From the sequence record OR836606.1: a stretch of 64,000 nucleotides of DNA, one strand, 5' to 3'. Below, piece by piece: positions 25,763-64,000 of the stretch. The notes beneath the pieces were generated by a model. It worked only from the letters and a program-made list of their open reading frames with translations. It was not told the DNA's origin and searched no databases. Positions within the stretch are counted from its first letter, which is position 1, and each line of letters begins with the position of its first letter. The position numbers and the translations under genes are program-made.

Positions 25763-26314
25763 ATGTTAAATTTCAACGAAGATAATAATTTCATTATTAT
25801 TAATGAAAAAGCATTTGTGCCTGGTAAAGGTAAAGGTCCTTTTGTTAAACCTTTCCGAGCTTCAGGTTCACAAATCCGTTTATTTAAACGTTTAGGTTTA
25901 CAAGTAACAATTGTCGATGAAGACTATGTATACCCAAGCGATAAATCAGATAAAAAAGAAGATAAAAATGAAACTGTTTCCGAATCAAGTGACACACAAC
26001 CTCAAGAAGAAAGCAACAATGAAGAGAAGAAATTGGATGAAGAAACAGAAAGTAAAGAAACAGAAAGTAAAGAAACAGAAAGTAAAGAAACGGAAAGTAA
26101 AGAAACGGAAAGTAAAGAACCAGAAAGTAAAGAAACGGAAGAATTAAAAGAAGAAGACAAAGAAGCAAAAGTTTATGGAGAAATCAAAGTTACAGAAGAA
26201 GAACTAAATGAATTCACTGTAGCTGAACTTAAAGAAGAATTAGATTCTAAAGGAATCGATTATGTTAAAAATGCTCGCAAACAAGATTTAATTAACTTAT
26301 TATTAAAAAAATAA
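25763..26314 (+). CDS. Protein with KETES repeats and a C-terminal HeH/Rho-N-like helical domain
   Basis: TVAELKEELDSKGI..ARKQDLINLL. Confidence 0.65.
   Translation: MLNFNEDNNFIIINEKAFVPGKGKGPFVKPFRASGSQIRLFKRLGLQVTIVDEDYVYPSDKSDKKEDKNETVSESSDTQPQEESNNEEKKLDEETESKETESKETESKETESKETESKEPESKETEELKEEDKEAKVYGEIKVTEEELNEFTVAELKEELDSKGIDYVKNARKQDLINLLLKK
26042..26140 (+). repeat. 15-bp tandem repeat (GAAACAGAAAGTAAA), about 6.5 copies
   Basis: Directly visible. Confidence 0.95.
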
Positions 26315-45764: not shown

Positions 45765-45778
45765 TATATTGATCTCCT

Positions 45779-46558
45779 TTATTTAAAATTATTTTTCACT
45801 AAATATTCTTTAATAACTTTCTCATCTGTAATTTCTTCAAATACTCCAGATATTTTATATTCATCAAACAAATTATAATATTCATCATCTATATCATCAT
45901 TATTTCTTTTATCATTCTCTGGTATGTGCGAGAAACAACTATCTGATACAAAGAATTCTATATCAAAATGTGATCGGATTTGTGATAAAATTTCTAATAT
46001 ATAACTATTTACTTCGGTTAATATTTGGTATAAATCTTTATTATTTTTAAAATTAGTTTCTTTACTATTATTATAATCTGATATTAGATTTTCAGGACTT
46101 TCTATAGGTAAATTAAAAGGTATTTTTAAGATATTATCATTATCTAATATATTACCAATGACATTATTGAAAAATATTGAAGTTACATCTGGATTATATA
46201 TGGGTTCAATTCTAATTTTCAAACAATTTTTATTTTCTATTTTTTCATTGAATATAATATCAAAATCAATATTAAGTATATTTATTCCTTCTTTATTACC
46301 AACCTTATATTCTAAAAATGGAAAAATATTGCCAACTGATATAATTCCTGACCATAAATTATTTCCATTACTATCTTCACCCACAATCTCTTCAGAAAAT
46401 ATATCTATTTCTTCACTTTTTATTTGTAAATTAGGAAGTAAATAAGGTAGATATAAATGATCTTCATTTATACCATATCTAGATAAGTTATTAACTATAA
46501 ATAACTCATCTGTCATTTTACTTAAAAAATATGTTTTATCACTTTTATTTATACTCAT
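45779..46558 (-). CDS. Paralog family member
   Basis: N-terminal YFLSKMTDELFIV; C-terminal FEEITDEKVIKEYLVKNNFK. Confidence 0.8.
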   Translation of the reverse strand: MSINKSDKTYFLSKMTDELFIVNNLSRYGINEDHLYLPYLLPNLQIKSEEIDIFSEEIVGEDSNGNNLWSGIISVGNIFPFLEYKVGNKEGINILNIDFDIIFNEKIENKNCLKIRIEPIYNPDVTSIFFNNVIGNILDNDNILKIPFNLPIESPENLISDYNNSKETNFKNNKDLYQILTEVNSYILEILSQIRSHFDIEFFVSDSCFSHIPENDKRNNDDIDDEYYNLFDEYKISGVFEEITDEKVIKEYLVKNNFK

Positions 46559-46574
46559 TAAATTGATCCCTCTT

Positions 46575-47279
46575 TTATTTAAAATTATTTTTCACTAAGT
46601 ATTTTTTAATAACTTTTTCATCTTTAATTTCTTCAAATAATCCAGATTCATTAAGTAAAAATTTATAATCAAATATAGAAAATGATGTGTCTTCGTGTTT
46701 TTCCATTTTTGTATATATTCCTGTCATAAAATATGCTAACTCTGATTTCCTAACATTTAATTTTAAATTTCCATAACTCATTAAATCCATAATATAATTT
46801 AAAAGAGTTTTATTAAATTCTTTGACTAGTAATTCTAATCCTTCAAAATTTTCAATAGTGTGCCTTATAGTATCACTTAAGATTAAGTATTTTCCATCTT
46901 CTCTATTTTCTATTTCGTAAATAAAAGATTCTTCTGGAAAATCTTTTTTAAATATTCCTCCATCTAGAATAGAATTAAATTCTAAATTAAAATCTGTTTT
47001 GCAAATTTTTAAATTTCTTACATAATCATTACTTATTATATTAGAATTTTGTTTGATTTTAACTACTTTATCATTAAAAAGAGAATAGGTTAAAGAAAGT
47101 TCAGATCGGTAATTAAGATATCCAGGGTCTTTATTCAAATTCTCATTTTTATTAATATATTTCATACACATTTTAGTAAATATTTCAGTCAATTTATCTA
47201 TACGAAAGTCAGTTCTATCTATATCGAAGTGAAGTATTTCTCCATCTAATTTATATCTATAGTAATTATTATATTCCAT
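46575..47279 (-). CDS. Paralog family member
   Basis: C-terminal FEEIKDEKVIKKYLVKNNFK. Confidence 0.8.
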   Translation of the reverse strand: MEYNNYYRYKLDGEILHFDIDRTDFRIDKLTEIFTKMCMKYINKNENLNKDPGYLNYRSELSLTYSLFNDKVVKIKQNSNIISNDYVRNLKICKTDFNLEFNSILDGGIFKKDFPEESFIYEIENREDGKYLILSDTIRHTIENFEGLELLVKEFNKTLLNYIMDLMSYGNLKLNVRKSELAYFMTGIYTKMEKHEDTSFSIFDYKFLLNESGLFEEIKDEKVIKKYLVKNNFK

Positions 47280-47300
47280 TATGAAAATCCTTTCTTTATA

Positions 47301-48110
47301 TTATTTAAATCCTTTTCTAACTTTAAACGCTTTCATTTCTTTTTCTGTTTTAATTTCTTTAAATAAATTATTTTCATCACTTTCTATTAAATCTAATATA
47401 TTAACTAAACCATAATTTTCATTATAAAAATCAATATAAAATTCTATATCATCTTTATACATATATTTAATTTCATAAAGAGACATTAATATACTAAGAT
47501 TATTCTGGTATAATATGATAAAGAATAAATCCTTAAAATCTTCTATAAATTTAATAATAGGATTTTTATCAAATGCTGATATTGGAAAACTTAAATCCAT
47601 AAATGGTTCATTGCCATATTTGATCTCATATAAATTCTTTTCAAACAATTCAATATTATTTACAAGAGCTCTCATTTTTTCATTTATTCCTTCATTAACC
47701 AAATTATTTTCATTTACTAAATCATTAGTAATTACATTGAAATATTCTTTATATAATGAATTATCAAAATGAAAATCTAATTTAAATTCTCCACTTTCAA
47801 TAGTTTCAATTTTATTCATTCTAGCAATATTAAAATTAATATGAAAATTAGTATTAAATTTTTTAAGAGTATCATTTTTATTATGTGTATTTCTAAAATA
47901 AATATCGCTATCAATTTCTTTATAATGAAAAATCATATAATCTTCTTCTTTAGAAATATTATCTATGAAAGATTTAGCATATCCTTTGCTACTTAAAAGA
48001 TTATTAATATCCATAGTAGTTAATACGTATGCAATATATTCATATCGGTTAAGATAATTTCTATCAATTTCAATTAATTCATCTCTCTCTTTATCTATAA
48101 AATATTTCAT
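47301..48110 (-). CDS. Paralog family member (start revised to ATG 48110)
   Basis: MKYFIDKERDELIEI...FKEIKTEKEMKAFKVRKGFK; AAAGGA RBS. Confidence 0.75.
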   Translation of the reverse strand: MKYFIDKERDELIEIDRNYLNRYEYIAYVLTTMDINNLLSSKGYAKSFIDNISKEEDYMIFHYKEIDSDIYFRNTHNKNDTLKKFNTNFHINFNIARMNKIETIESGEFKLDFHFDNSLYKEYFNVITNDLVNENNLVNEGINEKMRALVNNIELFEKNLYEIKYGNEPFMDLSFPISAFDKNPIIKFIEDFKDLFFIILYQNNLSILMSLYEIKYMYKDDIEFYIDFYNENYGLVNILDLIESDENNLFKEIKTEKEMKAFKVRKGFK

Positions 48111-48111
48111 A

Positions 48112-48888
48112 TTAGGAAAATCCTTTCTTAACTTTAAATTTTTTAATTTCTTTCTCATCAGTTATTTCTCTAAAATATGCATCAACATCAAAATCATTTA
48201 AACTAATATACTTATCATATTCTTTTTCAAAACTAAAATCTTTTTCTTTTTCCCTTTCTTTACCACTAAAATTCCAATCTGTTGCAATAAGAAATTCAAT
48301 ATCTGAATGATCTTGTATCTGATCTAGCAATTCAAAAATTAATTTATTTGTAGTAGTAAACATCTTGTGTAAATCTTCCTTGAGTTCTAAAGGTCTTTTT
48401 CCCTTTTGTATATGACTTTTAAAATATTTTAAAAAGCGAATCATAACTTCTTCATTAAAGTCATGCGGTAAATCTAGTTCACCATTATCATCAAATATAC
48501 CAGATCTTTTACTAAATAATCTCTTCCCTATTTCACTATTATTATATAAAGGAATAGCTTTAAACTTAATATAATTATCGTCTTCTTCATTTAGACTAAA
48601 GCGTATTATAGCGTATATAAGAAGTTCCATTTTATTTTTCTTACCTTTATATTTGTATTTAACTTTGGGGAAAGCATTAAAATTTATTCTAAGACCAACT
48701 AAACCATTGTCATCATGTTCTTCATGAGATATAAGAAAACTCTCATTATAATTTATTTGCATTGTAGTGAATAGCTCACTTAAAACTTTCCACTTAAAGT
48801 CAAAATAGAGTGTTTCATTTTCATTGAAAGTTAATTCTATAAATTCATCTTTCGATTTACTAATGTAGTATTTGTTAATTTTCTCCAT
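48112..48888 (-). CDS. Paralog family member
   Basis: YYISKSKDEFIEL...FREITDEKEIKKFKVKKGFS. Confidence 0.8.
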   Translation of the reverse strand: MEKINKYYISKSKDEFIELTFNENETLYFDFKWKVLSELFTTMQINYNESFLISHEEHDDNGLVGLRINFNAFPKVKYKYKGKKNKMELLIYAIIRFSLNEEDDNYIKFKAIPLYNNSEIGKRLFSKRSGIFDDNGELDLPHDFNEEVMIRFLKYFKSHIQKGKRPLELKEDLHKMFTTTNKLIFELLDQIQDHSDIEFLIATDWNFSGKEREKEKDFSFEKEYDKYISLNDFDVDAYFREITDEKEIKKFKVKKGFS

Positions 48889-48992
48889 TTACTTAACTCC
48901 TTTTATTATAATAATCCCAATACTAATTTAATAGTATTGGGATAACATTTTTATAATATATATTTATTCTAATTTTCAGAATTAGGCGATAC

Positions 48993-49370
48993 TTAACTAT
49001 TTTCCATTTCTTCACGTTGTCTTTTTAATCTATCAAGAACTTCTTTTTCTTCTACATTTTGATTTAATTCTGGTTCAATTAATAATTCTTTTTCTTTCAT
49101 ATCTTCTAATATATTTAATCCTTTTCCAAACTCTGGAGATTCATTAGGAGGATTAAATCTATTGTGTTTATTATCATAGAAATTTAATTTAACTAGATCT
49201 GAATTAGGTTCAATAACTACCTCAGCTTCTATGAATAAAATATCATAAGGGTCAGTGACACGTTTTCTATATAGCAAAGCTTTAGTATAAGAATCTTTTT
49301 TAAATCCATAATCTCTTAATTCTTGTTTAATATTTTCTTTACTTAAGTTTAATTTGTATTCTGATAACAT
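48993..49370 (-). CDS. Hypothetical protein
   Basis: 125-aa ORF with GGAG RBS. Confidence 0.7.
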   Translation of the reverse strand: MLSEYKLNLSKENIKQELRDYGFKKDSYTKALLYRKRVTDPYDILFIEAEVVIEPNSDLVKLNFYDNKHNRFNPPNESPEFGKGLNILEDMKEKELLIEPELNQNVEEKEVLDRLKRQREEMENS

Positions 49371-49504
49371 TACTTATTGCACTCCTTTTCATTGTATTCA
49401 TGAACTTCATTAAGATGTCTATGGTCATGATAAATAAACATGCAATCTTCTAATTTAGGTTCATATCTCTTTTTAGTTAATAATTCATATAATCTTTTTA
49501 ACAT
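49370..49504 (-). CDS. Small hypothetical protein, 44 aa (not in the ORF track)
   Basis: MLKRLYELLTKKRYEPKLEDC...; GGAGG RBS; fills the gap in the operon. Confidence 0.55.
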   Translation of the reverse strand: MLKRLYELLTKKRYEPKLEDCMFIYHDHRHLNEVHEYNEKECNK

Positions 49505-49519
49505 GATAAACCTCCTTCC

Positions 49520-49861
49520 TTAAAATGATACGTGTAGAAATATATAAAAATCATTCTTAACTCTATCAATTTTATATATTTCTGACATAAGAGCATGATA
49601 ATAAGATAAATCATAATAAAAGTTATCTTCTTTTAAGTCATCAATCATTAGATCTCTTAAAGTTTCATTATCTATAACAATAATATCATCATGCGGAACT
49701 TTTGATTTAAACTTTAATGTTTTATAAAGTTCTTTAGGTGTATTAAAATATAATTCAAATAAATGGTTATCTTCTTTTTTATATCGTTCTTGATCAAGAT
49801 ACCATTGTAAATCTCTTTGTTTACTTTTATTAATTCCGTATATACTTAAACTAAATTCCAT
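49520..49861 (-). CDS. Hypothetical protein
   Basis: 113-aa ORF with RBS. Confidence 0.7.
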   Translation of the reverse strand: MEFSLSIYGINKSKQRDLQWYLDQERYKKEDNHLFELYFNTPKELYKTLKFKSKVPHDDIIVIDNETLRDLMIDDLKEDNFYYDLSYYHALMSEIYKIDRVKNDFYIFLHVSF

Positions 49862-49915
49862 ATTCTCTCCTCCGATATAATATAGCTCCGTAATACATTA
49901 TAGAGATAAAATTAA

Positions 49916-50695
49916 TTAAAATTCAGCTTTTTGATATAAGTTTCCGAATTCATCTTTAACTATATCATCTCTGCCCTCAACTTCTTCAAATACTAAATCT
50001 CTGGTCATGGTAAATAATTCTGGGTATTCTTCTTGAAGTTCATCTTCTTCAATAATATTCATATCCATATCAGCAACTACTAATTCATATTCTTCAGGAG
50101 AATCCCCTAAAACAAAGAATTGTAGTGAACCTTTATAGACTTTTAATATAGAAGATAAATCTTGTTGATCTAATTCATTAATTTCTTGACTCAATTCTTC
50201 TTTTCGATCCAATTCTTTATTAATAGATTTTTCTTCTTCATCCAATTGTAATAATTTTGCGTCTAATTCTTCTCTAAAATCATTGTCTTCATCATTTACT
50301 TCTTCAGGTTCCATCATACTGTCTAGAATGTCTTTATTAGACATTGTATTAAGTTGATTAAGTACATTCTTAGCAAGCTCTTTATAATTATCTTCTGATT
50401 CATCATCAATAGACATTTTCTGAGCTTTCATAGTTAAGTCTATAATATCTTTCTTAACATTTTTCATTTGCATAATAGTATCTTTAATTTCTTTCTCTAC
50501 ACTAATAATGTTAGCTTCCATATTAGATACAAATGTATGTTTAGGATATTTCAGATTCTTAGTTAGATCCATTATACGATGTTCTAATTGAACTTCTTTC
50601 TTTTCCATTTTATCCTTAAATTTTACTAGCATTTTATATTCTTCCATCATATCATTAATTTGTGATATCAAATCAATTTCAACATTATCGGACAT
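49916..50695 (-). CDS. Acidic coiled-coil hypothetical protein
   Basis: 259-aa ORF. Confidence 0.7.
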   Translation of the reverse strand: MSDNVEIDLISQINDMMEEYKMLVKFKDKMEKKEVQLEHRIMDLTKNLKYPKHTFVSNMEANIISVEKEIKDTIMQMKNVKKDIIDLTMKAQKMSIDDESEDNYKELAKNVLNQLNTMSNKDILDSMMEPEEVNDEDNDFREELDAKLLQLDEEEKSINKELDRKEELSQEINELDQQDLSSILKVYKGSLQFFVLGDSPEEYELVVADMDMNIIEEDELQEEYPELFTMTRDLVFEEVEGRDDIVKDEFGNLYQKAEF

Positions 50696-50751
50696 TTATT
50701 TTTTCAACTCACTTCCATCATATTAATTAATATAAAAGAAAGTTAATTAAA

Positions 50752-51390
50752 TTATTTAAAATTTTCTTTAACCGCTAACTTTTTTATTTCTTTTTCATCT
50801 TCTACCTTTTCTAAAATCTCATAAAGTTCATTAAAAGTATATTCATTTAAAATTAAATCTTTTCTAAATTCTTGACTGGTTATGAAATCGACATTATCTT
50901 TTTTTGAATTAACTGTGTATACTAATAAACTTATATCTTTTTCGTTATTAAAAAGATTAACTATATTTGAAATTAATTCGTATTCTATATTATTTATATT
51001 TTCAATTTGAATATAAGTTACATATGAAAATACATTACCGCTAATTAAAGTTTTAAAAGGTCCTATATTTTTACATTCTTTATCAATATTACGTAATAAT
51101 GAAAATACAAAATATAATTCAAAACAACCATTACCTTTATCAGTTATATCTATATAAAAACCTCTAGTTCTATAATAGGTATTTTTGTCCTTTATCAAAA
51201 TACCATCATTTCTTAACGAAAATGAGCCATTTTCATCTATCTTATTTTTAATATTGTTAGAATTAAATAACTCTTTAAATAATTCAATATTTAATTCTTC
51301 TTTACTAGTATCTTTTTTAACGGAAACTATGTCACCTCTATCATCAATCTTATAAAAATCATGATTTTTGATATATTGATTTATACTCAT
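50752..51390 (-). CDS. Paralog family member
   Basis: C-terminal LEKVEDEKEIKKLAVKENFK. Confidence 0.8.
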   Translation of the reverse strand: MSINQYIKNHDFYKIDDRGDIVSVKKDTSKEELNIELFKELFNSNNIKNKIDENGSFSLRNDGILIKDKNTYYRTRGFYIDITDKGNGCFELYFVFSLLRNIDKECKNIGPFKTLISGNVFSYVTYIQIENINNIEYELISNIVNLFNNEKDISLLVYTVNSKKDNVDFITSQEFRKDLILNEYTFNELYEILEKVEDEKEIKKLAVKENFK

Positions 51391-51406
51391 TAAGTTATTC
51401 TCCTTT

Positions 51407-52015
51407 TTATTTAAAGTTTTCTTTAGTTAGATATTTTTTAATTTCTTTTTCGTCTTCTAACTCTCTAAAATATGCATGAGGTTCAAATATATCAATACCA
51501 TTTATAAAGATTTTAATATTTCCATTATTTTCTTCTTTAAGCATTTCATCTAGCAAATTAGATAATTTATCTAAATCATTTTCATGTTCATCATAACCTA
51601 TAATATTTTCTTTATGAAAATTTTTCATCATGATTATACTGACACCGAGTGAATTCTTATCAACTTCTAAAAGTTCTTTATCCGCATGTCTACTAATAAA
51701 AGCCCTTAATTGCAAAGTTACTTTATTATCTTTAATTTTTGCATATGAGAATTCTAAGAATTCTACTGGAAGATTCTTTCTAACTTCATTATACATATTG
51801 CTGAAATATATATTTTCACTATCAATTAATTCAAAGAGTAAACTTAGATTATAATAAAGGTCATCATTTAAACTATAGTAATCTAAATTTCTTTCTATTA
51901 ATTTTTTATAATAGAGTTTATTTATCTTATCTTTAATATCACTTTCATCTTTACTAATTATAAAAAGCTCATTAATATCTTTATTATAATAGAATTTATT
52001 TTCTTTTAAAATCAT
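51407..52015 (-). CDS. Paralog family member
   Basis: FYYNKDINELFII...FRELEDEKEIKKYLTKENFK. Confidence 0.8.
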   Translation of the reverse strand: MILKENKFYYNKDINELFIISKDESDIKDKINKLYYKKLIERNLDYYSLNDDLYYNLSLLFELIDSENIYFSNMYNEVRKNLPVEFLEFSYAKIKDNKVTLQLRAFISRHADKELLEVDKNSLGVSIIMMKNFHKENIIGYDEHENDLDKLSNLLDEMLKEENNGNIKIFINGIDIFEPHAYFRELEDEKEIKKYLTKENFK

Positions 52016-52165: not shown

Positions 52166-54712
52166 TTATTCTTTAGTTAAAGAGTATAAAGCTTGTACCA
52201 TATTATTTATGATAATTAGACTATATCTTCTTAGTAATATATTTAGTCGTTGAACAACTTATATTAAGTTGATGCTGATTAATCTAATAAGATACTTCCA
52301 GCAATTAATATTATTTATTGAGAGCATACAAGCATGTTACTCTCATTACCCAAATTACGTACTGAATTACCAGTGTAGTTTAGGTAGTTAGTTTTCTTAT
52401 TAAGAAGTTTATTAGCTTCTTTATTAGCCTCTACAGTCCAGAGAGATCTGATAGAAATCATATCCATTTACGTTATCTATATTAAGATAATATAGATCAG
52501 ACTATATCTTTACTTTAATAAGCATATTATATTTAGTCGTTGAACACTATTTGTAGTGATGCTGATTAAGATAATAATCTTTCCCAGCAATTAATAATAT
52601 TTAAATACGGCAATATAAATTACCGTCAAACGTTTATGTTATCTATAATAAATGATATCATAGACCAGACTATATCATCATCTCAATTGAGATATATTAT
52701 ATTTAGTCGTTGAACAACTTATATGAAGCTGATGCTGATTGCTCTAATAAGAGTTTTCAGCAATTAATAATATTTTCATTCTTAAATCACTTTAAGAAGC
52801 GACTTTTTCAAATCGGCACCTAACGCTATTTAATTTATAATTAAATTTGGACTATATCATAAACCTAAATATTAGGTTCCCTCACACTTCGGGAATTCAT
52901 TTCCCTACTCTACTCACTTCGTTATAGTATTTCAACTATACTTATTCTCTATATAAGAGTTACATTTATTGTTTTCGATAGTCTCTGAACGTTTATCCAT
53001 CATGTGGATACTTCGCTGCTAGACTTTCCCATTATTAAATACCCTTAGCATTTTCAGCATAGGTCATCAAAGAGATTTTTTCTGTCTTTCGACTGCATGT
53101 CACGCTATCCATTACTGGCATACGTTGTAGCTCTCTAAGCATTAGGGTTTACAAGCAATTCATAAGGTATTTTTTATCCTATATTACTATAAGACTGGAG
53201 CGTAAGTTACTCCGGCATAACTGTTGTGTATAATAGCGGTATCTATAAATACATCTTCATCAACAGGATATTCATGAACAACTTTAGGATAATCTTTAAG
53301 TACAATATCGTCTAAAGTAATTTCAGGAATTGTATCAACTGTAGTCAATATTTTAATTTTGGCAGGTGCAACATTCAAGAAATTTTCGCAAACTATATTA
53401 AATTAATACAGATCAGACTATATCATTACCTACTTTTAGGTATATTATATTTAGTCGTTGAACAAGTTTAATTGACTTGATGCTAATTAACCTATTAAAG
53501 TCTTTTAGCAATTAATAATATTTTCATTCTTAAATCACTTTAAGAAGCGACCAGTGTATTAATCGGATATCTTGAATAAACCACATGCTTATCTTCACAT
53601 ATTTCTGTAGCAGCTATATAAAGTAAATCAATTACAGTAAAAGTTCTACCTAAAGTATTTTCAAATAATTTAACTTTATGACGTTTACCTTGTCTATCAT
53701 TTACATATATAGGACTAAATCTTTCATTAGGATCCTTAATAAAGAATTCTAACATATTCTTAATAGCTTTATCATCAAACTGTTCATATACTTCTTCTAA
53801 TGATAATTCATTTTCATCAGTTCCAGTAGCGGTTTGGAAGGCATCTTTGTGGATTTCAATAAAATCGATAATGTATTTGCTAAAGAAAGGTAAGAATAAA
53901 GTAACTAATTGAGTTAATGGTACCCCTAACTGACCAAATTCAATTTGCATTTCATCCCATTTATTTGAATTAATCTTAGGTGAAGAAATAACTGAGCGAG
54001 TACTGTTATCTACCGTCTTACCTAAAATATTTCTTTGCATCATACCAGTTTTACCTGATAGTTCTCCTGAAGTTAATTTAACGTATATTTCAAATAATTT
54101 ATTTTGAATATTATATTTAGTCGTATTAGCTACAAAGTCAAATGAATTAAAACTAATTGAATCTACAGATCTTAAGATGCTTGCATACATATCATTTATT
54201 TCTTCAGTATCTTGAATTTCCCCTGAAGTTTCATTAGGATTAAAGTCACGATAGAAAGCAGGTATTACGAGCCATTTATCTGTGAATATTCTATCTTTAG
54301 GAGTATTTTTAAGCATATCAATTTTTTCATTTCGGATACGAGAATCATTTTTTCTAAATTTAAGATTTTCATAATTATCGTATAAGAAATTTAATCCAGT
54401 TTCACCATTTTCATCTGGAACTAATTGTCCTTTCTCAATTTTAAAGTAATCAGAACCTTGAATACATAGATCTATATTCTTATCTAATTCTCTCATAGCT
54501 TTATAAGCTACAGGATTCAAGTATTTGCCACCTAAATTAATCCAACCTATATTATTCTTTCTTTCATCAGTACCTATTAAACCAAATATTTCATATGAAA
54601 ATAAACCATCTTCTTTAGGTAAAGTTCCTGAATCAAAGAAAATAGGATTAGTAACTTCTTTAGCTCCATAAGCTGTAATAACTTGATCAACATTAACCAT
54701 ATCTATTTTCAT
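52166..54712 (-). CDS. rpoC: RNA polymerase beta-prime N-terminal (catalytic) subunit, probably virion RNAP, spliced from 6 exons, 503 aa
   Basis: Exons 54712-53562, 53388-53210, 52825-52812, 52630-52622, 52464-52339 and 52198-52166 total 1512 nt and are in frame. They yield RYPI|ENFLN, HNSYAG|ALGAD|FDG|DMISIR and NLGNES|VQALYSLTKE. GKTVDNSTRSVIS motif. Confidence 0.88.
52199..52338 (-). ncRNA. In10: mini group I intron, 140 nt (shortest in the window)
   Basis: P1 GAGAGU/GCUCUC; P10 CUUGUAU with 3' exon GUACAAG; core motifs. Confidence 0.92.
52465..52621 (-). ncRNA. In11: mini group I intron, 157 nt
   Basis: P1 ACGGU/GCCGU; junction GGT|GAT. Confidence 0.92.
52631..52811 (-). ncRNA. In12: mini group I intron, 181 nt
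   Basis: P1 CGAU/GUCG with GAAA loop; junction GAT|TTT. Confidence 0.9.
52826..53209 (-). ncRNA. In13: full-size ORF-less group I (IA-type) intron, 384 nt; 5' site probably after GGAG
   Basis: GAAUUGCUUG..UAGCAGC..UUCAGAGACUA..UGAUAUAGUCC with P7 extensions; IGS CUUACG-CUCC; 5' boundary uncertain by 1 nt. Confidence 0.8.
53389..53561 (-). ncRNA. In14: mini group I intron, 173 nt
   Basis: P1 CGAU/GUCG; junction CCG AT|C GAA; P4 GCUA/UAGC; sister of In12. Confidence 0.9.
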
Positions 54713-54761
54713 TTAATACTTCACTTCCAATCTAATTTTATAAAAAAATAAATATATAAAA

Positions 54762-54790
54762 GCCATGTTAAGCTATAAACTTAACATGGC
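54762..54790 (-). terminator. Hairpin terminator
   Basis: GCCATGTTAAG / CTTAACATGGC. Confidence 0.7.
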
Positions 54791-54798
54791 AATAATTA

Positions 54799-55551
54799 TT
54801 AATTAACTAAGCTGTTACTCATATAACTAAAATAATTTAAATCTATTTCTTTTTCTTTAGCTTTCATAATAGTTGCTTCATCTAATTTTTGATTATATCC
54901 TAATGAAGGAATATCAATACCGGTCTGCATAACATTATCACAGTTCATTATAATATCTTTAATATTACTAACCTCGTCTTCATATATTCTAGTAACATAC
55001 CCTAATGTGTTAATTACATCTGATTTCTTTTCATCTGATTCAAGATAATAAATATCAACCTTTTCCATACTTCCCCTAAATAAAGTTTTTAAAAATCTTT
55101 CTTTAGATTTTAAGTTATTGTCAGAAGTCTTAGTTACAATTGACAATTTATTCATTAAAGGAGTATTAATTGTATATGACAAACTTTTAGCTAGATTTGT
55201 TGGCTGTAATGTATCGTATAAATCTTTTTTAAATACAATTTCTTCGTGAAGTTTATTTCTAGCTTCATTAACTTCATCTTCAGAAAATCTTTCATAAACA
55301 TCTTTTCTCACTAACCATTGGTCAATATAATATTCAGGACGATTGAGAACTGTATTGTAATGAGTGCTATAATTATAATCTGGAGATAGTCTGAAAAATT
55401 GATTGTAATAATCAAAATCTTCATGCATTAATTGAACAATTTTAGGTGAAATATTCACTAAAACTTCATCGCAATCAACAACTATATGACCTGTATTCAT
55501 TTCGTTCTCTTTATACATATAATTAAAATTCTCCTTTGTCATAATCTTCAA
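54799..55551 (-). CDS. HAD-superfamily phosphatase, 5'(3')-deoxyribonucleotidase-like
   Basis: Motif I IVVDCDEVL; later KSDVI..IYEDE motifs. Confidence 0.6.
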   Translation of the reverse strand: MKIMTKENFNYMYKENEMNTGHIVVDCDEVLVNISPKIVQLMHEDFDYYNQFFRLSPDYNYSTHYNTVLNRPEYYIDQWLVRKDVYERFSEDEVNEARNKLHEEIVFKKDLYDTLQPTNLAKSLSYTINTPLMNKLSIVTKTSDNNLKSKERFLKTLFRGSMEKVDIYYLESDEKKSDVINTLGYVTRIYEDEVSNIKDIIMNCDNVMQTGIDIPSLGYNQKLDEATIMKAKEKEIDLNYFSYMSNSLVN

Positions 55552-56863
55552 TGAATCTATTTTTTAATTCTTTTATTTTATCTTCATGAAATTTAGTTTG
55601 TCTAATTTTAAAAGGTTTAGTGCTGTCAAGAAAATCTGTTGAATGAATATTTTCTTCATCAACTAAAGTCATATATTTAGGATTAGTTGTATTTAGTGCA
55701 TCATATAAATCAAATTTATTCTTTTTCATAAGATTGTATTTATCTTGAGTCATTAAAACTGAATAATAAATATCCTTTAATTTAACTGATCTTCTGTAAT
55801 TAGAAGGATCTTGTAAACCAGGTGTTTCTTTAGTATTAGTTATAATTCCTTTACCATGATACTCCTTACCAATATAATAAACTAAATAAATGAACCCCAT
55901 ATTATCTTTAACGCTAAATAATCTATATCCATCTTTATTTTCATCAAATACCTCATAAATATTCCAATCATTAATTACTCTACGCTTAGCATAATAGGGT
56001 CTATTTTCTGGTTTTAAATGATATGGTTGTCCTCCAATACTAAGTCGTTTCTCATATTCTTCTTTTTCAAGTTGTTTAATATAAGTTTTACTAAATTTAT
56101 CCAAAACAATTGAATGTTCTTCATCAAAACTTTCATAATTATAATTAAAAGGTAATACAATCCTAAAAGTTTTACTTGTACATCTATATAAAACTTTACT
56201 TAGATTTTTTTCATTTAATTTAATTTGGATTTCATTAGTTTCTTCATTATAATTAATATCTTCATCATTTATAGAATATAGACTTTTAGTAATTACATTA
56301 AATGTAATTGGATTAACGTCTTCAATCATATTAATAATGATTAAATTTCTTTCATAATCTATATATGCTAACATGTTATACATATCTAAGTTAAGTGAAT
56401 CAGGGTCATACTTATCCTTTGTTTTATGAGGATCTCTAGCCCATACCTCTAATTCTCCCGCATTTTTAATTTTTAATTTAGAATTATCTTTTAATGTGAT
56501 ATCTTTAAGAAAATCTTTACCAATATGATTTCTACCAATCTCATTTAATAATATTGCTAGTTGATGTTCAAATAACTTAGGTATATCTTTCTCTAAAGTA
56601 AAGAAATAACAATCATTATTAAAATTATTTTTATTGCTTTTACGATATTCCTTTAATAAATCAACTAACTCTTTATCTTCATTAAATCGAATAATATTAT
56701 CAATAATAAATCTATTTTGATCAAATCTATAGAACCATGTCCCATTATCATCCATTTTTCTTAACTTAGCCGGTATTTTTCTACCATTTTTTCTGTATAA
56801 ATTCAAATTTTTACTAAATACATCTGACTGTTTTGCCATAGCATTAATACACTCCATTTTCAT
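55523..56863 (-). CDS. Hypothetical protein
   Basis: 446-aa ORF (start probably at MAKQ) behind an early-type motif at 56909-56924. Confidence 0.7.
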   Translation of the reverse strand: MKMECINAMAKQSDVFSKNLNLYRKNGRKIPAKLRKMDDNGTWFYRFDQNRFIIDNIIRFNEDKELVDLLKEYRKSNKNNFNNDCYFFTLEKDIPKLFEHQLAILLNEIGRNHIGKDFLKDITLKDNSKLKIKNAGELEVWARDPHKTKDKYDPDSLNLDMYNMLAYIDYERNLIIINMIEDVNPITFNVITKSLYSINDEDINYNEETNEIQIKLNEKNLSKVLYRCTSKTFRIVLPFNYNYESFDEEHSIVLDKFSKTYIKQLEKEEYEKRLSIGGQPYHLKPENRPYYAKRRVINDWNIYEVFDENKDGYRLFSVKDNMGFIYLVYYIGKEYHGKGIITNTKETPGLQDPSNYRRSVKLKDIYYSVLMTQDKYNLMKKNKFDLYDALNTTNPKYMTLVDEENIHSTDFLDSTKPFKIRQTKFHEDKIKELKNRFIEDYDKGEF

Positions 56864-57050
56864 TTATTTAAAAATGTATCTTAAAAAAGATACATTTCTA
56901 TTACAATTTTATAATATATATTTTAACATAAATTAAAAATTTATGCAAGAAATTTTATATGAAAGTTGATAAATTTTTCTAATTATATAAAATCAATTAT
57001 TTTATCTGAATACATACCAATATTTTCCAATATGTATCCAGATAAATTAT

Positions 57051-60000
57051 TTAGAATTTAATCATATTAGATACAAATGAACTATTTGAAGATTCCAATA
57101 CTCTAACACCAATAGATTCAATAATATCTTTACCTGGTTTAATATGATCTTCAATCATACTATCATAGTCAATAAAAGGTCTAAACTCTTCAGGAATTGT
57201 ATTACCTTCAACTGCAATTACATTTAAACCGTTTTTAACTAAACTTTCATTCTTAAATACTTCTCTAAATCTATCTAAAGTATCTTCATCAGTTATCTTA
57301 TTTTTAATATCTCCAAATGTACTAATATTCAATTTAACTGCTAATATCTTAGCAGGTAATGCTATTTCTTTTTCTGGGAACATTATATTCCATGCTAAAG
57401 CAGCTCTATATGCCATTTGAGAATAAGGGTCTTTATATACCTCAGCATTATTAGCTTTAAACGGTTTTAAGAATTCGATTTCTCCATTATCTAATGATTT
57501 CTTAATCATTTCTTCTATATCTTTAAATTTACGTATTATCTTAATACGATCTACACCGGTTTTATTTTCTAAAATATCTTTTTGTAATATTTCAGTAAAT
57601 AGTTCTCTAATACGTTTATTAGTATTAACTTTTCTAATAGCCATACCTTTAACATCTAAATCTGGAGGTTGAATTAAATTACCCTCTTGTTGAATTACTG
57701 ATGATGCATAAGTTTTCTTTTTATCAGTTGTTAATTGTTTATCAAGTAAAACATTTTTATTAGCTTTATTAAATTAATAAAGATTAGACTATATCTTATA
57801 CTTATATTAAGTACATTTATATTTAGTCGTTGAACTTAATTTCTTAAGCTGCTGATTTAATTAATGAACTATTCCAGCAATTAATAAATTTATCTTTCTG
57901 TATATCGCTATACAACGGAGCATTAACTTGATAATACTCATTTTTCATTGATATTAAACCTAAATGTTCTTCCTCTAATCCTACATCTTTACAGAATCTA
58001 TAGTAAGACAATTCTAATAATTTAGTTATTTGATAGTTAATAATAGATATATTACTTACACGTTGTTCTAATTTATCCTCTAAACCATTCTCTGCAATTG
58101 GAAAATCTTCAGGTTTTAAAGATTTAAATTTTTCGTATAACGGATCTAAGTGAACAAAGTTCATTTATGTTAGCTGTATCAAATATAATACAGATCAGAC
58201 TATATCTTCTTTAGAAATATATTTAGTCGTTGAACTTAATTTCTTAAGCTGCTGATTTGATTAATAAATCATTCCAGCAATTAATATTTTTTATTGACAG
58301 CAATTTTTTATCACAACTGTCAGTATCTATAGTTAATACGCTTCTACGTTTCTTGTAATTCATTCTATACATTCTATTATAATCTTGATAATTATATATA
58401 ACCCAATCTTTTAATATTTCAAATAATTCATCTAATAATGGAATCATATCTTCAGGAGGATCATTTGGATCTAAGAAATCTTCTCTGCCAGTCATTTTAC
58501 TAATTTTATTATCAAATATATCGGTATGATCAATTAACCCAAATAAATTATTTTTGAAATATACTTTATTTTTATCTTCTTGACTTAATTTACTAAATAC
58601 TTCTTCTAACTTAAGAAAATCTTCTTCACTATAATCTTCTTCAACATTAGAAACTAAACCTTCTAAAATTTCTTTATCAGTTGGAATTGATTTTATCTTA
58701 ATATCATGATCTTCATATTTTTCACTAATTATTCTTAATATATAATGATATATTTCATCAATCTTCATGAAAAAGATTTTACCGCCAATAAATCTTTCTA
58801 AAGCTATCGCTGAAGTAGTTACAATATCAACTGCTATATAAATTCGTGAATTTAATTTAATTAATTCGAATTTATTCGACTTCGTCATTACTTTTACTTA
58901 CTTTGCACTTTAAGTTTTTCGTTATAAACTACTTCAACATAAAGTGTCAACCAAAGCAGAGGTTAAAGCTCTTAAGTCATCACATTTGGACATTCAAGAG
59001 AATTTAAATCTAGTTAGCCTGCCCAACAAAACGCTTACCGTACATTTTGAGGTTGACAGCAGCGTTATAATCTCTATCCATTTTATTTCCACAATCACAC
59101 TTATACCATCTATCTGATAACTTCATCTTATTTTCTTTAGTTAAGACTTGACCACAATTAGAACATAATTGAGTTGATGGGAACCATCTATCTGCTACAA
59201 TAATAGTATTACCATTGCTTTCAGCTTTTTGTTTTAATAAAGTTCTGAATTGTCTCCAATTCATTGCAGAAATAGATTTAGACAAATTTCTATTTTTAAT
59301 CATATTTGAAACTTTAAGATCTTCAATTGTAATATACTGATAATTTTTAATTAAGTTAGTAGTTATTTTATGAAGATAATCTTTTTTAATGTTATTAATT
59401 CTCATCCATATTTTTTGTATTTTGGTTTTCAATACATTGTATTTGTTAGAACCATAAACTTTACGAGATAATCTTTTTTGATAGTACTTAATCTTATTGT
59501 ATAGTGGAATCAATTTATCATTTAATGAATGATATTTCTTAAATTTACCGAAATCATCATTAATGATAGCTAAATCTTTTACACCTAAATCAATACCAAC
59601 ATGGCTATTGTTATGAATTAAGCTCTTATTATTATCAACTTTCATTACTATTGAAGCGAAATATTTTCCAGCATATTTAGATATAGTAACTTCTTGAATG
59701 GAATTATAATTAAACGGGATAGATTCTTTCATTTTAATTAATGAATTAATTCCTTGAAGTTTTAATTTATTATTTTTATCGCCTTTAATTTGTAATGAAT
59801 AATTATTCTTCTTATAGAACCTTGTACTTAATTTAGAATGTTTTTTAGATTTAAATCTCGGATACTTACCGTAACCTTTCCACATCATATTAAAAGCTTT
59901 ACCTAAATCTTCAGTTGCTGTGTCCATAACTTGAGATATTTGATCTTTTTCCCAATCTTCTTTACATTTTTTAAGTTCATCACGAACTTTCCTATGTGTT

Positions 60001-61234
60001 GGTTTTGGAAGAGATGTATCAAGTTGATGAGCATTCCACATTTGTTTCCATTTATTAAGCCCTTTATTATAAATATATCTAGAATATCCAAATGCTTGAT
60101 TAAATACTTCTTTTTGTTCTTTATTTGGTTTCAATTCGATTTTAATAGATTTGTACATGTGATTTCACCTCCTTCAAATATATAATATATACTTAAAGTT
60201 AGTGATGAATTTTAATTAAATTAAACTCACGAATTCCTGATTTAGTGTTTCCACATCAGTTAAATAGCAAGACTATATCATATTCTATCAGAATGATAGA
60301 ACCCTCGCACTTCAGGAATATTATTTCCCTACTCTACTCACTTCACATAGTATTTCAACTATGCTTATTCAGGCGTTAATCCTGTGCTTTCGATAGTCGT
60401 TGAACGTTCATCCATCATGTGGATGCTTCGCTGCTAGATTTTCCATTAGTCCACCCTTAGCACTTAATTTACATTAAGCTTTTATTTCAGCCTAGGTAAT
60501 CTTAGAGTATTTTTTCTGATTTTCATCTGCTTTCACGCTATCCATTACTGGTATACGTTGTAGCTCTCTAAGCTTTAGGAGTTTACAAGCAATTCACGAG
60601 GTTTGCTCACTTCTTTCATGAATTAAACTAACTTTAATTCACTATGAAGTAAGGGAGTTTTGATTAACTATTTTAAAATAATTTAAGTGAGCAATTCGTG
60701 TTAAATCACTTAAATTATATTAAACTAAAATAGTTTCTTTTCTCCACTATAAGTAGTTGCTGGACCTGAATTAGCATCATAGAATGTACTATTTTTCTGT
60801 ATCATAGCACCGTAATAACTGTTAGCTAAGATCTTAATTGTTTTTTGTTCATTCATATATTTATCATGTAAAACATCATCTTTACCTTTATAAATAAACA
60901 TATTGTGCTTAGCTACTTTACGAGAATCTATAAAGTCTTTTAACATTTCCGCATTTAAATTTTTTCTTTGTGATTGAGGCTGATAAATAGAACCAGAACC
61001 AGTTACAATTAAATTATTATTAATAATTTGTCTTAAGGTTGTATCTACATTCATTTTTTGTCCTGATATTTCTATTAAAGCTGGATCTAAATGTTTTTTA
61101 ATATATTCTCTACAGGCATTAATTAGTTTCTCATCATCAATATCAGGTTTTCTTATTTTAATTAATTTAATTAAATTTTCTAAATAACCCGTTATAGCCC
61201 TTTTACGTTCATATTTATTATCTTGATTAGACAT
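57051..61234 (-). CDS. Split family-B DNA polymerase, C-part (motifs B and C), spliced from 4 exons, 644 aa
   Basis: Exons 61234-60742, 58830-58316, 58161-57936 and 57751-57051 total 1935 nt and are in frame. KILANSYYG, TYSG-V|DIVTT, IDTDS|NFVHL, MKNE-F|LLDK..KKTYA. Confidence 0.88.
57752..57935 (-). ncRNA. In15: mini group I intron, 184 nt
   Basis: P1 GAGU/GCUC; P2 UGUAUA-GCGA-UAUACA; core motifs. Confidence 0.9.
58162..58315 (-). ncRNA. In16: mini group I intron, 154 nt, directly after DTDS
   Basis: P1 UGACAGU/GCUGUCA; core motifs. Confidence 0.92.
58831..59050 (-). ncRNA. Putative omegaRNA scaffold of In17 TnpB
   Basis: Structured region overlapping the tnpB 3' end (CTCTT/AAGAG stem; AACTA pairing with TGAAG-TAGTT), continuing to the 3' splice site. 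Confidence 0.55.
59010..60158 (-). CDS. tnpB: TnpB RNA-guided endonuclease (intron-encoded)
   Basis: KIELKPNKEQ HTH; RuvC VGIDLG, ITIEDL, DRDYNAA; Zn finger CSNC..CDC; GGAGGTG RBS. Confidence 0.93.
   Translation of the reverse strand: MYKSIKIELKPNKEQKEVFNQAFGYSRYIYNKGLNKWKQMWNAHQLDTSLPKPTHRKVRDELKKCKEDWEKDQISQVMDTATEDLGKAFNMMWKGYGKYPRFKSKKHSKLSTRFYKKNNYSLQIKGDKNNKLKLQGINSLIKMKESIPFNYNSIQEVTISKYAGKYFASIVMKVDNNKSLIHNNSHVGIDLGVKDLAIINDDFGKFKKYHSLNDKLIPLYNKIKYYQKRLSRKVYGSNKYNVLKTKIQKIWMRINNIKKDYLHKITTNLIKNYQYITIEDLKVSNMIKNRNLSKSISAMNWRQFRTLLKQKAESNGNTIIVADRWFPSTQLCSNCGQVLTKENKMKLSDRWYKCDCGNKMDRDYNAAVNLKMYGKRFVGQAN
60182..60197 (-). promoter_or_regulatory. Early-type promoter-like motif inside In17, upstream of tnpB
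   Basis: Minus strand TAAGTATATATTATA versus the recurring TAAATATATATTATAA. Confidence 0.5.
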
Positions 61235-61712: not shown

Positions 61713-62372
61713 TTATTTAAAATTTTCATTTATTTTATATTTTTTAACTTCACTTTCAGAAAGTTCTTCAATTATACTATTCCTTCTGGTATTAAATACA
61801 ATTTCAATATCTTCTAAATAAAATATATTACTATCTTCTATCTTCCCATTTTTAAATAAAGATAGATTAAATGAATATATTTTCCATCCTAAAATAAATT
61901 TAATTTTGTTTAGAATAGAGCAAACTACATTTTCAAAATTATCTTTATCTGTATGGATTATAACATCGTTATCCGAATATTCTATATGAAATTCTTCATT
62001 TAAGTCTATTAAAGATATTTTAGTTGCATGTAAATCATAATATACACCTAAATCTAATTTCAATTCAATATCAGAACGATACTTAGTGAATAATATAGAA
62101 ATAAAATTATTATTATCAATATCACTTGAAAATACTAATGACACATCATTTTTATTTAAATTATTCGAAATAAAATCTTGGATTAAAATTTTAAAATATA
62201 AGAAAAAGCTGATTTTATCATTTAATTTAAACACATTATTTTTTCTTAAGTTTACATCTTTAGAAAAATTGAAGTTCAAATAATTAATTTTTAATCTATA
62301 ATAAAAAGAATCATCGTTGAATCTCAATAAATTTGTATAGTGATTTATTAATTCATCTCTAAATTTTTCCAT
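61713..62372 (-). CDS. Distant paralog family member
   Basis: C-terminal IEELSESEVKKYKINENFK. Confidence 0.7.
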   Translation of the reverse strand: MEKFRDELINHYTNLLRFNDDSFYYRLKINYLNFNFSKDVNLRKNNVFKLNDKISFFLYFKILIQDFISNNLNKNDVSLVFSSDIDNNNFISILFTKYRSDIELKLDLGVYYDLHATKISLIDLNEEFHIEYSDNDVIIHTDKDNFENVVCSILNKIKFILGWKIYSFNLSLFKNGKIEDSNIFYLEDIEIVFNTRRNSIIEELSESEVKKYKINENFK

Positions 62373-62394
62373 TCAAAATTTCCTTTCTCACTGT

Positions 62395-63108
62395 TTATTC
62401 TAATTCTAATCTTTCGTATCCTAAATAACCTTTAGCTTCTTGTATATTATTGTACTTATTAATTACATTAACTAAACTATGTCTTAATCTATGATAAATA
62501 GGTCCTTTAAGACCATCTATTTCATAATCAATGAACATGATCCATTTATTTAATAATTGATCATCAATTTCAATTATTAAATTACTATTCATCAAATATT
62601 CAAATAATGATGTTAAATGAGGATTAGACATTAAACCTTTTAATCTATCCAATGGAACATCTTCTCTAAAATTAGTATATAAAAAATAAGCTAAGTCTTT
62701 GCTATCAGTTTCTTTTATATTAGATTTAATATTTTTTAATCTAGTAATAAATAAATTTTCATTACTGATAGTTTTATCAATTGGATCAATCATTTTAAAT
62801 AATCTAGAGATAGAAGCTTTTCTTATTAAATTAGTTAGAAATTCATCTGGTTTTTTATTTATAAATAAACCATTTGATTCGAAATTATCTATAACAAAAT
62901 CTATAAATCTATTATATTTATCTAATTCTTTTTTAGTAAATAGAGTAGTATCTAAGTTGTTATTAATATAACAACTTAAAATATTACTTTCTATTAATAA
63001 TTGAAATGAAACCATATTAAGCGCAGAAGGATCATCTAAATTAATACTCATGATATGGTCTATTCTAATATCATTTCTATTTTTTAATTTTTCTTCTTTA
63101 ACTAGCAT
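62395..63108 (-). CDS. Hypothetical protein
   Basis: 237-aa ORF with RBS. Confidence 0.7.
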   Translation of the reverse strand: MLVKEEKLKNRNDIRIDHIMSINLDDPSALNMVSFQLLIESNILSCYINNNLDTTLFTKKELDKYNRFIDFVIDNFESNGLFINKKPDEFLTNLIRKASISRLFKMIDPIDKTISNENLFITRLKNIKSNIKETDSKDLAYFLYTNFREDVPLDRLKGLMSNPHLTSLFEYLMNSNLIIEIDDQLLNKWIMFIDYEIDGLKGPIYHRLRHSLVNVINKYNNIQEAKGYLGYERLELE

Positions 63109-63122
63109 AAGCGGATTCTCCT

Positions 63123-64000
63123 TTAAATAAATGTCTTTTTAATTGTTTCATTCATAATTAATCTCTTTAATTTTCCTTTAGACATTTTAACAAGTGTAGA
63201 TGTTTTACTGTATTTCTCATTTGAAATATTAAATGTATTGTCTTTCATATTCATGTATTCTTTAACAAATTGTCTTTTCTGATTTTCCGTAAAATTATTT
63301 TCAATTAATTTTAATATCTCTTTAACTGCAATATCAGTATATTTATTAGCTGATTTAAAAGATAATAAGAATGATACCTCTTTATAAATATTATCTATTA
63401 ATGTAAAGAAACCAATTTTTGAAAAATATTTAACTTTATCTTCATTCTCAGCTTCCTGTATTTTATCGGTAAAATAATTATAATTTATTCCATTATTATA
63501 TCCTAAGAATTCATGTCCATATAAATTATCTATACCTAATACAAATCTTTCATATAAATAATATTTATTAAATTCATCATATTTAAGACTATTTATTTTA
63601 GACTCCATTAATAAATCTGCGTACTCTAGATCTTCTTTACTATTAATATGATTATTAAATAATTTATAAAAATTGTTTATAATTTTTAATTTAAGCACAT
63701 TATCTTTATGTGAAATATCCAAATCTATTAAACTAGATAATAGTTTCATAAATTTCTTTTTATCACCATTAAACGATAATTTAGTATCTAATAATTCTTT
63801 ATTTAAATTAAAAAATTTATTATTACTTATTTCATCCATATCATTAATGAATTCATCTATATATTCTTCTTTTAATAATCCAAATGAAAAATTTTCATAA
63901 GAAGATTTAAAACTATAAAGGAATTTAATGTTTTTAATATCATTATCTTTACAAAATTTATTTATATAAAATATTAAAGGTAATTGAGATATATTTAAAA
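63123..64000 (-). CDS. Hypothetical protein, 5' end beyond the right window edge
   Basis: The frame of track ORF 63123-63839 stays open to the window end (53 more codons). Confidence 0.7.
   Translation of the reverse strand, partial: LNISQLPLIFYINKFCKDNDIKNIKFLYSFKSSYENFSFGLLKEEYIDEFINDMDEISNNKFFNLNKELLDTKLSFNGDKKKFMKLLSSLIDLDISHKDNVLKLKIINNFYKLFNNHINSKEDLEYADLLMESKINSLKYDEFNKYYLYERFVLGIDNLYGHEFLGYNNGINYNYFTDKIQEAENEDKVKYFSKIGFFTLIDNIYKEVSFLLSFKSANKYTDIAVKEILKLIENNFTENQKRQFVKEYMNMKDNTFNISNEKYSKTSTLVKMSKGKLKRLIMNETIKKTFI

Follow-up and report, generated by a model that had tools for sequence, protein, structure and literature searches.

A G at the predicted 5′ splice site of two group I introns of a probable IS607-type IStron lineage in Staphylococcus jumbo phage LY01

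The window analyzed here, a stretch of 64,000 nt, is 100% identical to the genome of LY01 (OR836606.1, 258.9 kb), a PBS1/AR9-like Staphylococcus jumbo phage that infects S. aureus; window position 1 corresponds to record position 124001. Two genes on the minus strand are the subject of this analysis. A family B DNA polymerase gene (Pfam DNA_pol_B/divDNApol) is interrupted by the intron In17, and In13 lies in a gene for which the annotation in two relatives, MarsHill and Machias, reads β′ subunit of the viral RNA polymerase. The DNA polymerase and β′ genes are uninterrupted in S6, PALS_2, and vB_StaM_SA1 (1935 and 1512 nt), so that the exon junctions of LY01 could be defined at the base level. 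Around the junctions, all three read AGT GGT GTT GAT ATT in the DNA polymerase gene and GCC GGA GCA CTT GGT GCA GAT TTT GAC GGT GAT in the β′ gene. DNA alignment showed that the S6 DNA polymerase gene reads ...ACA TAT AGT GGT GTT GAT ATT GTA..., and that the LY01 gene reads ...ACT TAT AGT GGA G, then 1911 nt, then TT GAT ATT GTA.... Similarly, the S6 β′ gene reads ...AGT TAT GCC GGA GCA CTT GGT GCA GAT TTT GAC GGT GAT ATG..., and that of LY01 reads ...AGT TAT GCC GGA G, 384 nt, CG TTA GGT GCC GAT, a mini-type intron, TTT GAC GGT, another mini-type intron, and GAT ATG.... A sequence-only reading of the window had claimed that the 5′ exons of In13 and In17 both end in GGAG paired with CUCC of the internal guide sequence (IGS), which would place a G-C pair at the splice site instead of U-G, and had called this site non-canonical.

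We enumerated every in-frame combination of a 5′ and a 3′ splice site within ±24 nt and scored the products against the S6 protein. Exactly three registers per intron (GG↓AG, GGA↓G, and GGAG↓; arrows mark splice sites) restored the S6 protein window at 29/29, because the dinucleotide AG precedes the intron and occurs again at its end. Group I introns require a terminal G for the second step of splicing. Among the three registers, only GGAG↓ ... AG↓ gives the intron a terminal G, and the base at −1 is then G. By comparison with S6, the implied junctions are GCC GGA G↓CG TTA for In13 and AGT GGA G↓TT GAT for In17, and the terminal G52826 (In13) and G58831 (In17) belong to the only terminal-G registers that restored the protein. 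The best options with U at −1 and a terminal G cost at least two residues, yielding AGVTLGADFDG or AGVADFDG for In13 and TTSVD instead of TTYSGVD for In17; an acceptable U option is lacking in In17, just as the sequence-only reading had it. A U·G wobble was not found at the cleavage site; In13 has its U·G at +1 and In17 has none. The exact positions are, for In13, exon GCCGGAG ending at 53210, U at 53209, guide at 53201-53197, and G at 52826, and for In17, exon AGTGGAG ending at 60742, CUCC at 60657-60654, AUCAA at 60664-60660, and G at 58831.

As listed in Table 1, In17 carries a group I ribozyme at its 5′ side and a TnpB gene at its 3′ side, on the same strand and within a single element, as in IStrons. 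The guide lies directly 5′ of P2 and is flanked by an AAAA/AAAA internal loop, and the core contains P3 (GAATTGCTTG, 60595-60586) and P7 (CAACGACTATCG, 60402-60391, and GATATAGTC, 60279-60271). The TnpB protein matched the Pfam profiles OrfB_IS605, Cas12f1-like_TNB, and HTH_OrfB_IS605, and the NCBIfam profile guided_TnpB with 254.6 bits (cut-off 100). The right end is shared, at 89-91% identity, with the two other TnpB elements of LY01 and presumably provides the ω-RNA scaffold. In13 showed 78% identity to In17 across about 300 nt of the ribozyme core, and both were unrelated to the mini introns. Its centroid fold contained GGAGU/GCUCC, and the Rfam model set its splice-site U on the +1 U. Furthermore, the 3′ end of In13 forms a short hairpin (AUUUAAUU-AUA-AAUUAAAU) resembling closed inverted-repeat arms; In13 thus looks like a derivative without an open reading frame (ORF). 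When the introns were searched alone, Rfam Intron_gpI gave full-length matches to In13 (27.2 bits, E 4.6e-5) and In17 (21.2 bits, E 0.0037), both below the gathering score of 50. Rfam searches with the gathering threshold, and also at E ≤ 1 across 24 kb, returned no group I intron. Judged by these sequence features, In17 is an IStron with an IA2-like group I ribozyme at its 5′ end, and In13 belongs to the same ribozyme lineage as a copy without an ORF.

The remainder of the LY01 genome was then examined for further elements. A second IStron was found in the large terminase gene (terL) and a third in gyrA, together with an intergenic solo TnpB that has a right end and no ribozyme. Both terL and gyrA are intron-free in S6, and the same enumeration gave TCT AGA G↓AT CTA for terL and GAT GGT G↓AT ATA for gyrA. 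In these copies as well, the combination of G at −1 and a terminal G was the only terminal-G register that restored the S6 window at 29/29. The boundaries of the gyrA IStron are GATGGTG↓UUUG ... AACUG↓AUAUA, and the U that opens this intron pairs with A instead of G; the terL copy, like In13, has a +1 U in a displaced U·G pair followed by an internal loop. Synonymous differences were modestly clustered near the junctions, which would be a sign of co-conversion; with the In17 values left out, the clustering was clear only in terL (5/24 vs 6/96) and In13 (4/24 vs 8/96).

The closest relative of In17 was an unannotated element of Listeria phage LPJP1 (MZ422438.1, about 220.9-223.3 kb, minus strand; our label L011). 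It shares with In17 the 5′ flank GTGGAG↓AAAAG, the guide (AAAACTCCC / AAAACUCCC), the right end AATTTATATAGCAG, and the ribozyme, and its TnpB is 42.5% identical to that of In17, with a frame broken by an in-frame stop. In addition to TnpB, a gene for an IS607 serine transposase is present in the LPJP1 element (NF033518, 178 bits, cut-off 110; Pfam Resolvase). It differs from In17 in having this transposase and in lying outside coding sequence: its place is the 5′ untranslated region of groL in that phage, with a GGAG Shine-Dalgarno-like motif on one side and the start codon on the other. In addition, an ORF-less In17-type intron was found on the IMG/VR contig L104, in an RNA polymerase β′ homologue and inside the catalytic DxDGD motif. 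Its junctions are ...GCA CTT GGT GGA G↓AAAAC...AAACAG↓ATTATGATGGTGAT (3′ exon AT TAT GAT GGT GAT...), which restore G-G-D-Y-D-G-D; the catalytic D-Y-D-G-D was restored only with an exon ending in G. An element of Clostridium phage c-st (AGAGG↓UAAC..., guide G-CCUC, ending ...AACGG↓) fits, by phage and size (about 2.05 kb), the CbISt4 entry of the 2014 survey; the 5′ start UAAC is common to In13, the terL copy, and this CbISt4. The core dinucleotide at both ends is AG↓...AG↓ in In13, In17, the terL copy, LPJP1, and L104, and TG↓...TG↓ in the gyrA copy. A 15-nt core pattern occurred at 119 loci in IMG/VR, only seven of which had a real intron core. A right-end DNA pattern gave three matches among genome contigs, in unrelated metagenome-assembled genomes, and these were treated as chance. 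No further relatives of the LY01 TnpB lineage were found in a search of genome contigs or in searches of viral contigs with one protein and with an alignment.

Exon-guide pairing was compared across nine family members. In all of them, the four bases directly 5′ of P2 are complementary to the final four of the exon, the pairs being GGAG/CUCC, AGAG/CUCU, GGUG/CACC, and GAGG/CCUC. In a short, hand-assembled alignment of the nine (A3), pairing in the 4-bp exon:IGS helix reached 94%, and compensatory changes were seen at three of the four pairs; 0/500 shuffles reached the observed pairing or covariation, and every offset of the partner strand lowered both. P1 was compared in A3 because the P1 regions of In13 and the gyrA copy were out of place in the MAFFT alignment A1. 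The pair at −1 was G-C in 9/9 members. At +1, opposite the base 5′ of the guide, we observed U·G in six members, U-A in the gyrA copy, and A facing A in In17/L104 and LPJP1, and positions −5, −6, and +2 were unpaired. Unconstrained thermodynamic folding also recovered the P1 helix in In13, In17, the terL copy, the gyrA copy, and LPJP1. The proposed pairing of GGAG with CUCC in In13 and In17 was borne out by covariation and by the folds. These results support a 5′ exon that ends in G, in which G-C replaces U·G at the cleavage site and the U·G one base downstream is unused. This conclusion draws on the intron-free alleles, the four paralogous copies in LY01, the metagenomic copy that interrupts DxDGD, and the published reverse transcription PCR (RT-PCR) of BcISt1.

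The P10 pairings offered by the sequence-only reading did not hold up. CUUACG of In13 pairs with exon CGUUAG at 5/6 positions, the remaining one being a U-U mismatch, and fares no better than shuffled exons do; AUCAA/UUGAU of In17, separated from the IGS by two bases, was not above chance. The P10-like pairing is not conserved, as the paralogues show nothing comparable. The TTGAT that opens the polymerase 3′ exon is native gene sequence present in S6 and not a transposon motif.

Table 1. Positions of the LY01 introns, IStrons, and adjoining exons (window coordinates, except where a label L007 or L009 precedes the position).
Feature	Position	Strand	Basis
In17, 1911-nt IS607-type IStron by assignment (ribozyme, TnpB, right end); starts AAAAG, ends ...TATATAGCAG	58831..60741	-	S6 intron-free allele
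In17 internal guide CUCC, pairing with exon GGAG (60745-60742)	60654..60657	-	Minimum free energy and centroid folds; covariation
In17 group I ribozyme core P2-P9	60248..60657	-	Rfam Intron_gpI; alignment with CbISt4 and other members
AU-rich inverted repeat, 5′ arm, enclosing the TnpB region	60212..60236	-	24 nt, 96% complementary to 58864-58841
TnpB RNA-guided endonuclease gene within In17, 382 aa, intact	59010..60158	-	Pfam, NCBIfam
In17 right end; 3′ inverted-repeat arm 58864-58841, terminal G 58831	58831..59009	-	Conserved, about 180 nt
In13, group I intron of 384 nt, IStron lineage, no ORF; starts UAACUUACG, ends ...AAUUAAAUAG	52826..53209	-	S6 allele
In13 internal guide G-CUCC; CUCC pairs with exon GGAG (53213-53210), G with first intron base U (53209)	53197..53201	-	Centroid fold, Rfam
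DNA polymerase exon 1, ends ...ACT TAT AGT GGA G	60742..61234	-	Pfam; S6 polymerase nt 1-491 at 94%
DNA polymerase exon 2, starts TTGATATTGTAACT	58316..58830	-	Aligns to S6 polymerase from about nt 493
β′ exon before In13, ends ...AGT TAT GCC GGA G	53210..53388	-	S6 β′ nt 1153-1330; In12 ends at 53389
14-nt micro-exon CGTTAGGTGCCGAT, encoding ..A L G A D	52812..52825	-	S6 alignment and intron boundaries
Mini-type group I introns	53561-53389, 52811-52631, 52621-52465, 52338-52199, 58315-58162, 57935-57752	-	
Second IStron, in terL; TnpB 86% identical to In17 TnpB	L009:44551-42609		
Third IStron, in gyrA; different TnpB of 401 aa	L007:5607-3609	-	
Solo TnpB (380 aa, 86% identical to In17 TnpB), intergenic; right end ...TATATAGCAG	L007:12165-13500 (LY01 record 62165-63500)	-	

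IStrons have been divided into two groups (PMC4227781). Group A is of the IS200/IS605 type, inserted after TTGAT-like sites and with U at −1; group B is of the IS607 type, inserted after GG-ending sites and ending in CGG (PMC4227781). In group B, the 5′ exon has G as its last base and the intron U as its first, the U-G pair is shifted by one base pair, and an internal loop follows (PMC4227781). These elements have a long AU-rich inverted repeat around their ORFs, and ORF-less copies exist (PMC4227781). For BcISt1, RT-PCR confirmed splicing after G with the +1 U excluded from the exons, and the 2014 survey left open how group B IStrons choose the 5′ site (PMC4227781). The G at −1 is therefore the published signature of IS607-type ("group B") IStrons and not a new anomaly, and In13, with G↓U and U·G at +1, reproduces it exactly. 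Accordingly, the site that the sequence-only reading had called non-canonical is real, and its standing as an anomaly is lost, since In17 carries TnpB and the trait is known for IS607-type IStrons.

The LY01 elements resemble BcISt1 and group B in their IA2-type ribozyme at the 5′ side, TnpB (ORF B) downstream, G-ending site, AU-rich inverted repeat, and ORF-less derivatives, and In13 and the terL copy share the +1 U that is paired with G and followed by an internal loop. In contrast to group B, they have an AG or TG core instead of GG and no ORF A, the first base of In17 is A without a wobble pair, they reside in a dU-type Staphylococcus jumbo phage, and the introns are only distantly similar. 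The group B outlier CsISt1 of Clostridium sporogenes, which has an AG insertion site, a CAG end, and no ORF other than ORF B (PMC4227781), shows the arrangement of In17 and the terL copy (...AG↓ ... GCAG↓), a likeness drawn from its published description only. CbISt4, classed as IA2 (PMC4227781) and present in Clostridium phages c-st and D-1873, is like In13 and In17 in being phage-borne, of the IS607 type with delta-ORF A and ORF B, and alignable in its core; it differs in its GG core, a TnpB of about 36% identity, and a much more diverged ribozyme. In the IS607-type CboIStrons, the splice sites are the transposon ends, the transposon-adjacent motif (TAM) is TGGG, and the right end is ...UCGG (10.1101/2023.11.20.567912). 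CboIStron and CseIStron are like the LY01 elements in this coincidence of splice sites with transposon ends and in a G-rich TAM that forms the last exon bases, and their right end serves as both ω-RNA scaffold and 3′ splice determinant (10.1101/2023.11.20.567912; PMC13521648). They differ from the LY01 copies in the TAM TGGG and the right end UCGG, and their function was shown by experiment, whereas the LY01 copies are known from sequence. The canonical phage IA2 introns of Twort and T4 td share with In13 and In17 the core fold, the G-binding P7, and the terminal G; unlike them, they are cut after the U of a U·G pair and carry homing endonucleases instead of TnpB.

Taken together, we consider it highly probable that In17 is an IS607-type IStron and In13 an ORF-less derivative, and that cleavage occurs after the G of a G-C pair, with a scarless joining that restores the protein. 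The last four exon bases, GGAG, would pair with the guide CUCC directly 5′ of P2; the ribozyme would cut where this short helix ends on its 3′ side, behind the G of the G-C pair, and the exons would be joined after the intron's own terminal G, leaving no scar. The origin of this arrangement may lie in the insertion. A serine recombinase would insert an IS607-type element at a core dinucleotide that is then present at both ends, AG here, TG in the gyrA copy, and GG in Clostridium. With the core dinucleotide at both ends, the base before the 5′ splice site would be the same as the last base of the element, and since group I chemistry needs this last base to be G, the 5′ exon would have to end in G too. 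The constraint would then fall on the selection of the 5′ site and would be met by cutting at the helix end and not at the wobble pair.

Several points weigh against this reading. The IS607 serine transposase (ORF A/TnpA) is absent in and near the LY01 elements, and LY01 TnpB scored below both family-specific NCBIfam cut-offs (IS607_TnpB, 186 vs 350; IS200_TnpB, 270 vs 425), so that the IS607 assignment of the LY01 copies, probable as it appears, is drawn from the LPJP1 homologue and the structure of the ends. In17 is without the +1 U that the 2014 paper gives for group B, its first base being A opposite A. The IGS columns of A3 were placed by us relative to P2. Moreover, we infer splicing in LY01, and the exact sites, from protein conservation, and the registers GG↓AG, GGA↓G, and GGAG↓ yield an identical mRNA. 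As the three registers give one mRNA, a cDNA junction alone cannot separate them, and the choice among them follows the terminal-G rule of group I introns.

This identity of products leaves room for cleavage after GG or GGA, in which case G or A would stand at −1 and the last intron base would be C, U, or A; sequence alone cannot tell these registers apart from the one preferred here. We nevertheless regard them as very unlikely, because a terminal G is needed for the second step, as is well established for group I introns. In a 2026 mutational study of an IS607 IStron, all alternative 3′ sites that were used had a terminal G (PMC13521648), and neither register would bring U to −1 in In13, In17, or the terL copy; the gyrA copy could have it, but its intron would then end in U. 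Less probable again is canonical splicing of In13 at GGAGU↓, with an intron ending in C or at a downstream G (UUAGG↓). GGAGU/GCUCC does fold as a normal-looking P1 with U·G, and it is there that the Rfam covariance model aligns the splice-site U. However, an intron ending in C yields AGVLGADFDG, and the downstream G yields AGVADFDG with two residues lost, in both cases adjoining the catalytic loop. Ala-Leu-Gly is invariant in S6, PALS_2, SA1, MarsHill, Machias, and L104. Among the paralogues, In17, LPJP1, and L104 lack a U here and the gyrA copy pairs its U with A, and by RT-PCR the spliced exons of BcISt1 did not contain this U (PMC4227781).

The least probable of the alternatives, in our estimate, is that nothing is repaired at the RNA level, and that the genes yield split polypeptides, are restored by DNA-level excision in a subpopulation, or merely appear interrupted through assembly errors at the junctions. 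An ATG at 58888 in the 3′ region of In17 could start a C-terminal fragment, and IS607 elements are able to excise as DNA (10.1101/2023.11.20.567912). However, the same junction pattern was observed in four LY01 genes and in the independently sequenced LPJP1, L104, and c-st; In13 has no ORF, and a serine transposase is not found next to the LY01 elements. Furthermore, the ribozyme cores are conserved, and the same two genes hold mini introns and exons of 9 and 14 nt that are workable only if spliced.

As a control, six mini-type introns of the same two genes (In12, In14, In15, In16, and two in the polymerase gene) were solved likewise, and all six had canonical solutions with U at −1 and a terminal G. 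The sequence-only reading had assigned U to all 15 mini-type introns, which is supported for these six. For In12, boundaries taken from BLAST end-points had suggested an intron ending in C. These end-points were unreliable here, and this candidate was rejected: CCGAU↓...UUUG↓CGAAAAU restores P-I-E-N, with ATT replaced by the synonymous ATC (Ile), and the Machias sequence (L135:760-950, matching window 53570-53382, minus strand) permits the same solution. The mini-type introns are 140-184 nt long and have a single short hairpin between the P3 strands (UUGCUG ... CAGCA), the usual place of P4-P6. By BLAST, places of mini introns numbered 28 in LY01, 27 in Machias, 25 in AH12, 17 in PB50, 13 in Madawaska, and 10 in MarsHill; in S6 and PALS_2, the matches were confined to the exons flanking the intron in the query. 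None of the mini-type introns was found by Rfam at the gathering score. Across the catalytic ADFDGD motif of β′, 23 nt of coding sequence are split by In13, which sits a little upstream of the ADFDGD codons, In14, and In15, with micro-exons of 14 nt (52825-52812) and 9 nt (52630-52622) on the minus strand. In MarsHill, the β′ gene (L002:8115-9601) has a different intron, which is about 1.5 kb long, contains a homing endonuclease, and lies downstream of the In12 site by about 10 nt; its boundaries (…AAATTTCC↓GTGCG ... CGCTAT↓TAAATG) show no obvious U at −1 or terminal G either.

Other features of the window and genome were also observed. An array of seven paralogous genes, each of about 800 nt with conserved 3′ ends, occupies window 44964-51469 on the minus strand; a repeat with a 240-nt period (window 27364-28204) lies within the ORF 26338-28266, and a 15-nt tandem repeat is found at window 26025-26159. 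One LY01 gene is annotated as a retron-type reverse transcriptase (L007:23311-24813, record 73311-74813); a reverse transcriptase that is retron-like is present alike in MarsHill, Madawaska, and Machias, according to the published description of these phages.

The position adjacent to the cleavage site varies (U·G, U-A, and A/A) among copies in essential genes, and for this reason the displaced wobble is perhaps not essential, as the sequences suggest. More tentatively, we put forward, as a proposal that we hold at somewhat less than even, that the In17 subtype (In17, LPJP1, and L104) represents a natural group I ribozyme that chooses its 5′ site without a wobble, where a 4-bp helix terminated by G-C and flanked by the AAAA/AAAA loop comes to its end. 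If this is true, the displaced U·G of other group B IStrons would be dispensable, and the 5′ site would follow a helix-end rule imposed by the core dinucleotide, which supplies both the last exon base and the terminal G. Possibly new in the present elements are the phage host, the AG or TG core in place of GG, and this In17 subtype without any wobble pair.

When these phages are annotated, U at −1 cannot be assumed in setting exon boundaries, and none of these introns is picked up by Rfam at its default threshold. A U at the 5′ splice site is almost universal; the natural exception on record is the IS607-type IStrons, and LY01 provides a natural series of them: four paralogous copies in essential genes, with known intron-free alleles and three states of the adjacent position. 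Among these, In13, with 384 nt and no ORF, is compact and convenient for in vitro work. With the elements described here, the range of TnpB-bearing IStrons comes to include jumbo phages of Staphylococcus and Listeria, and their insertion sites the active-site codons of RNA polymerase.

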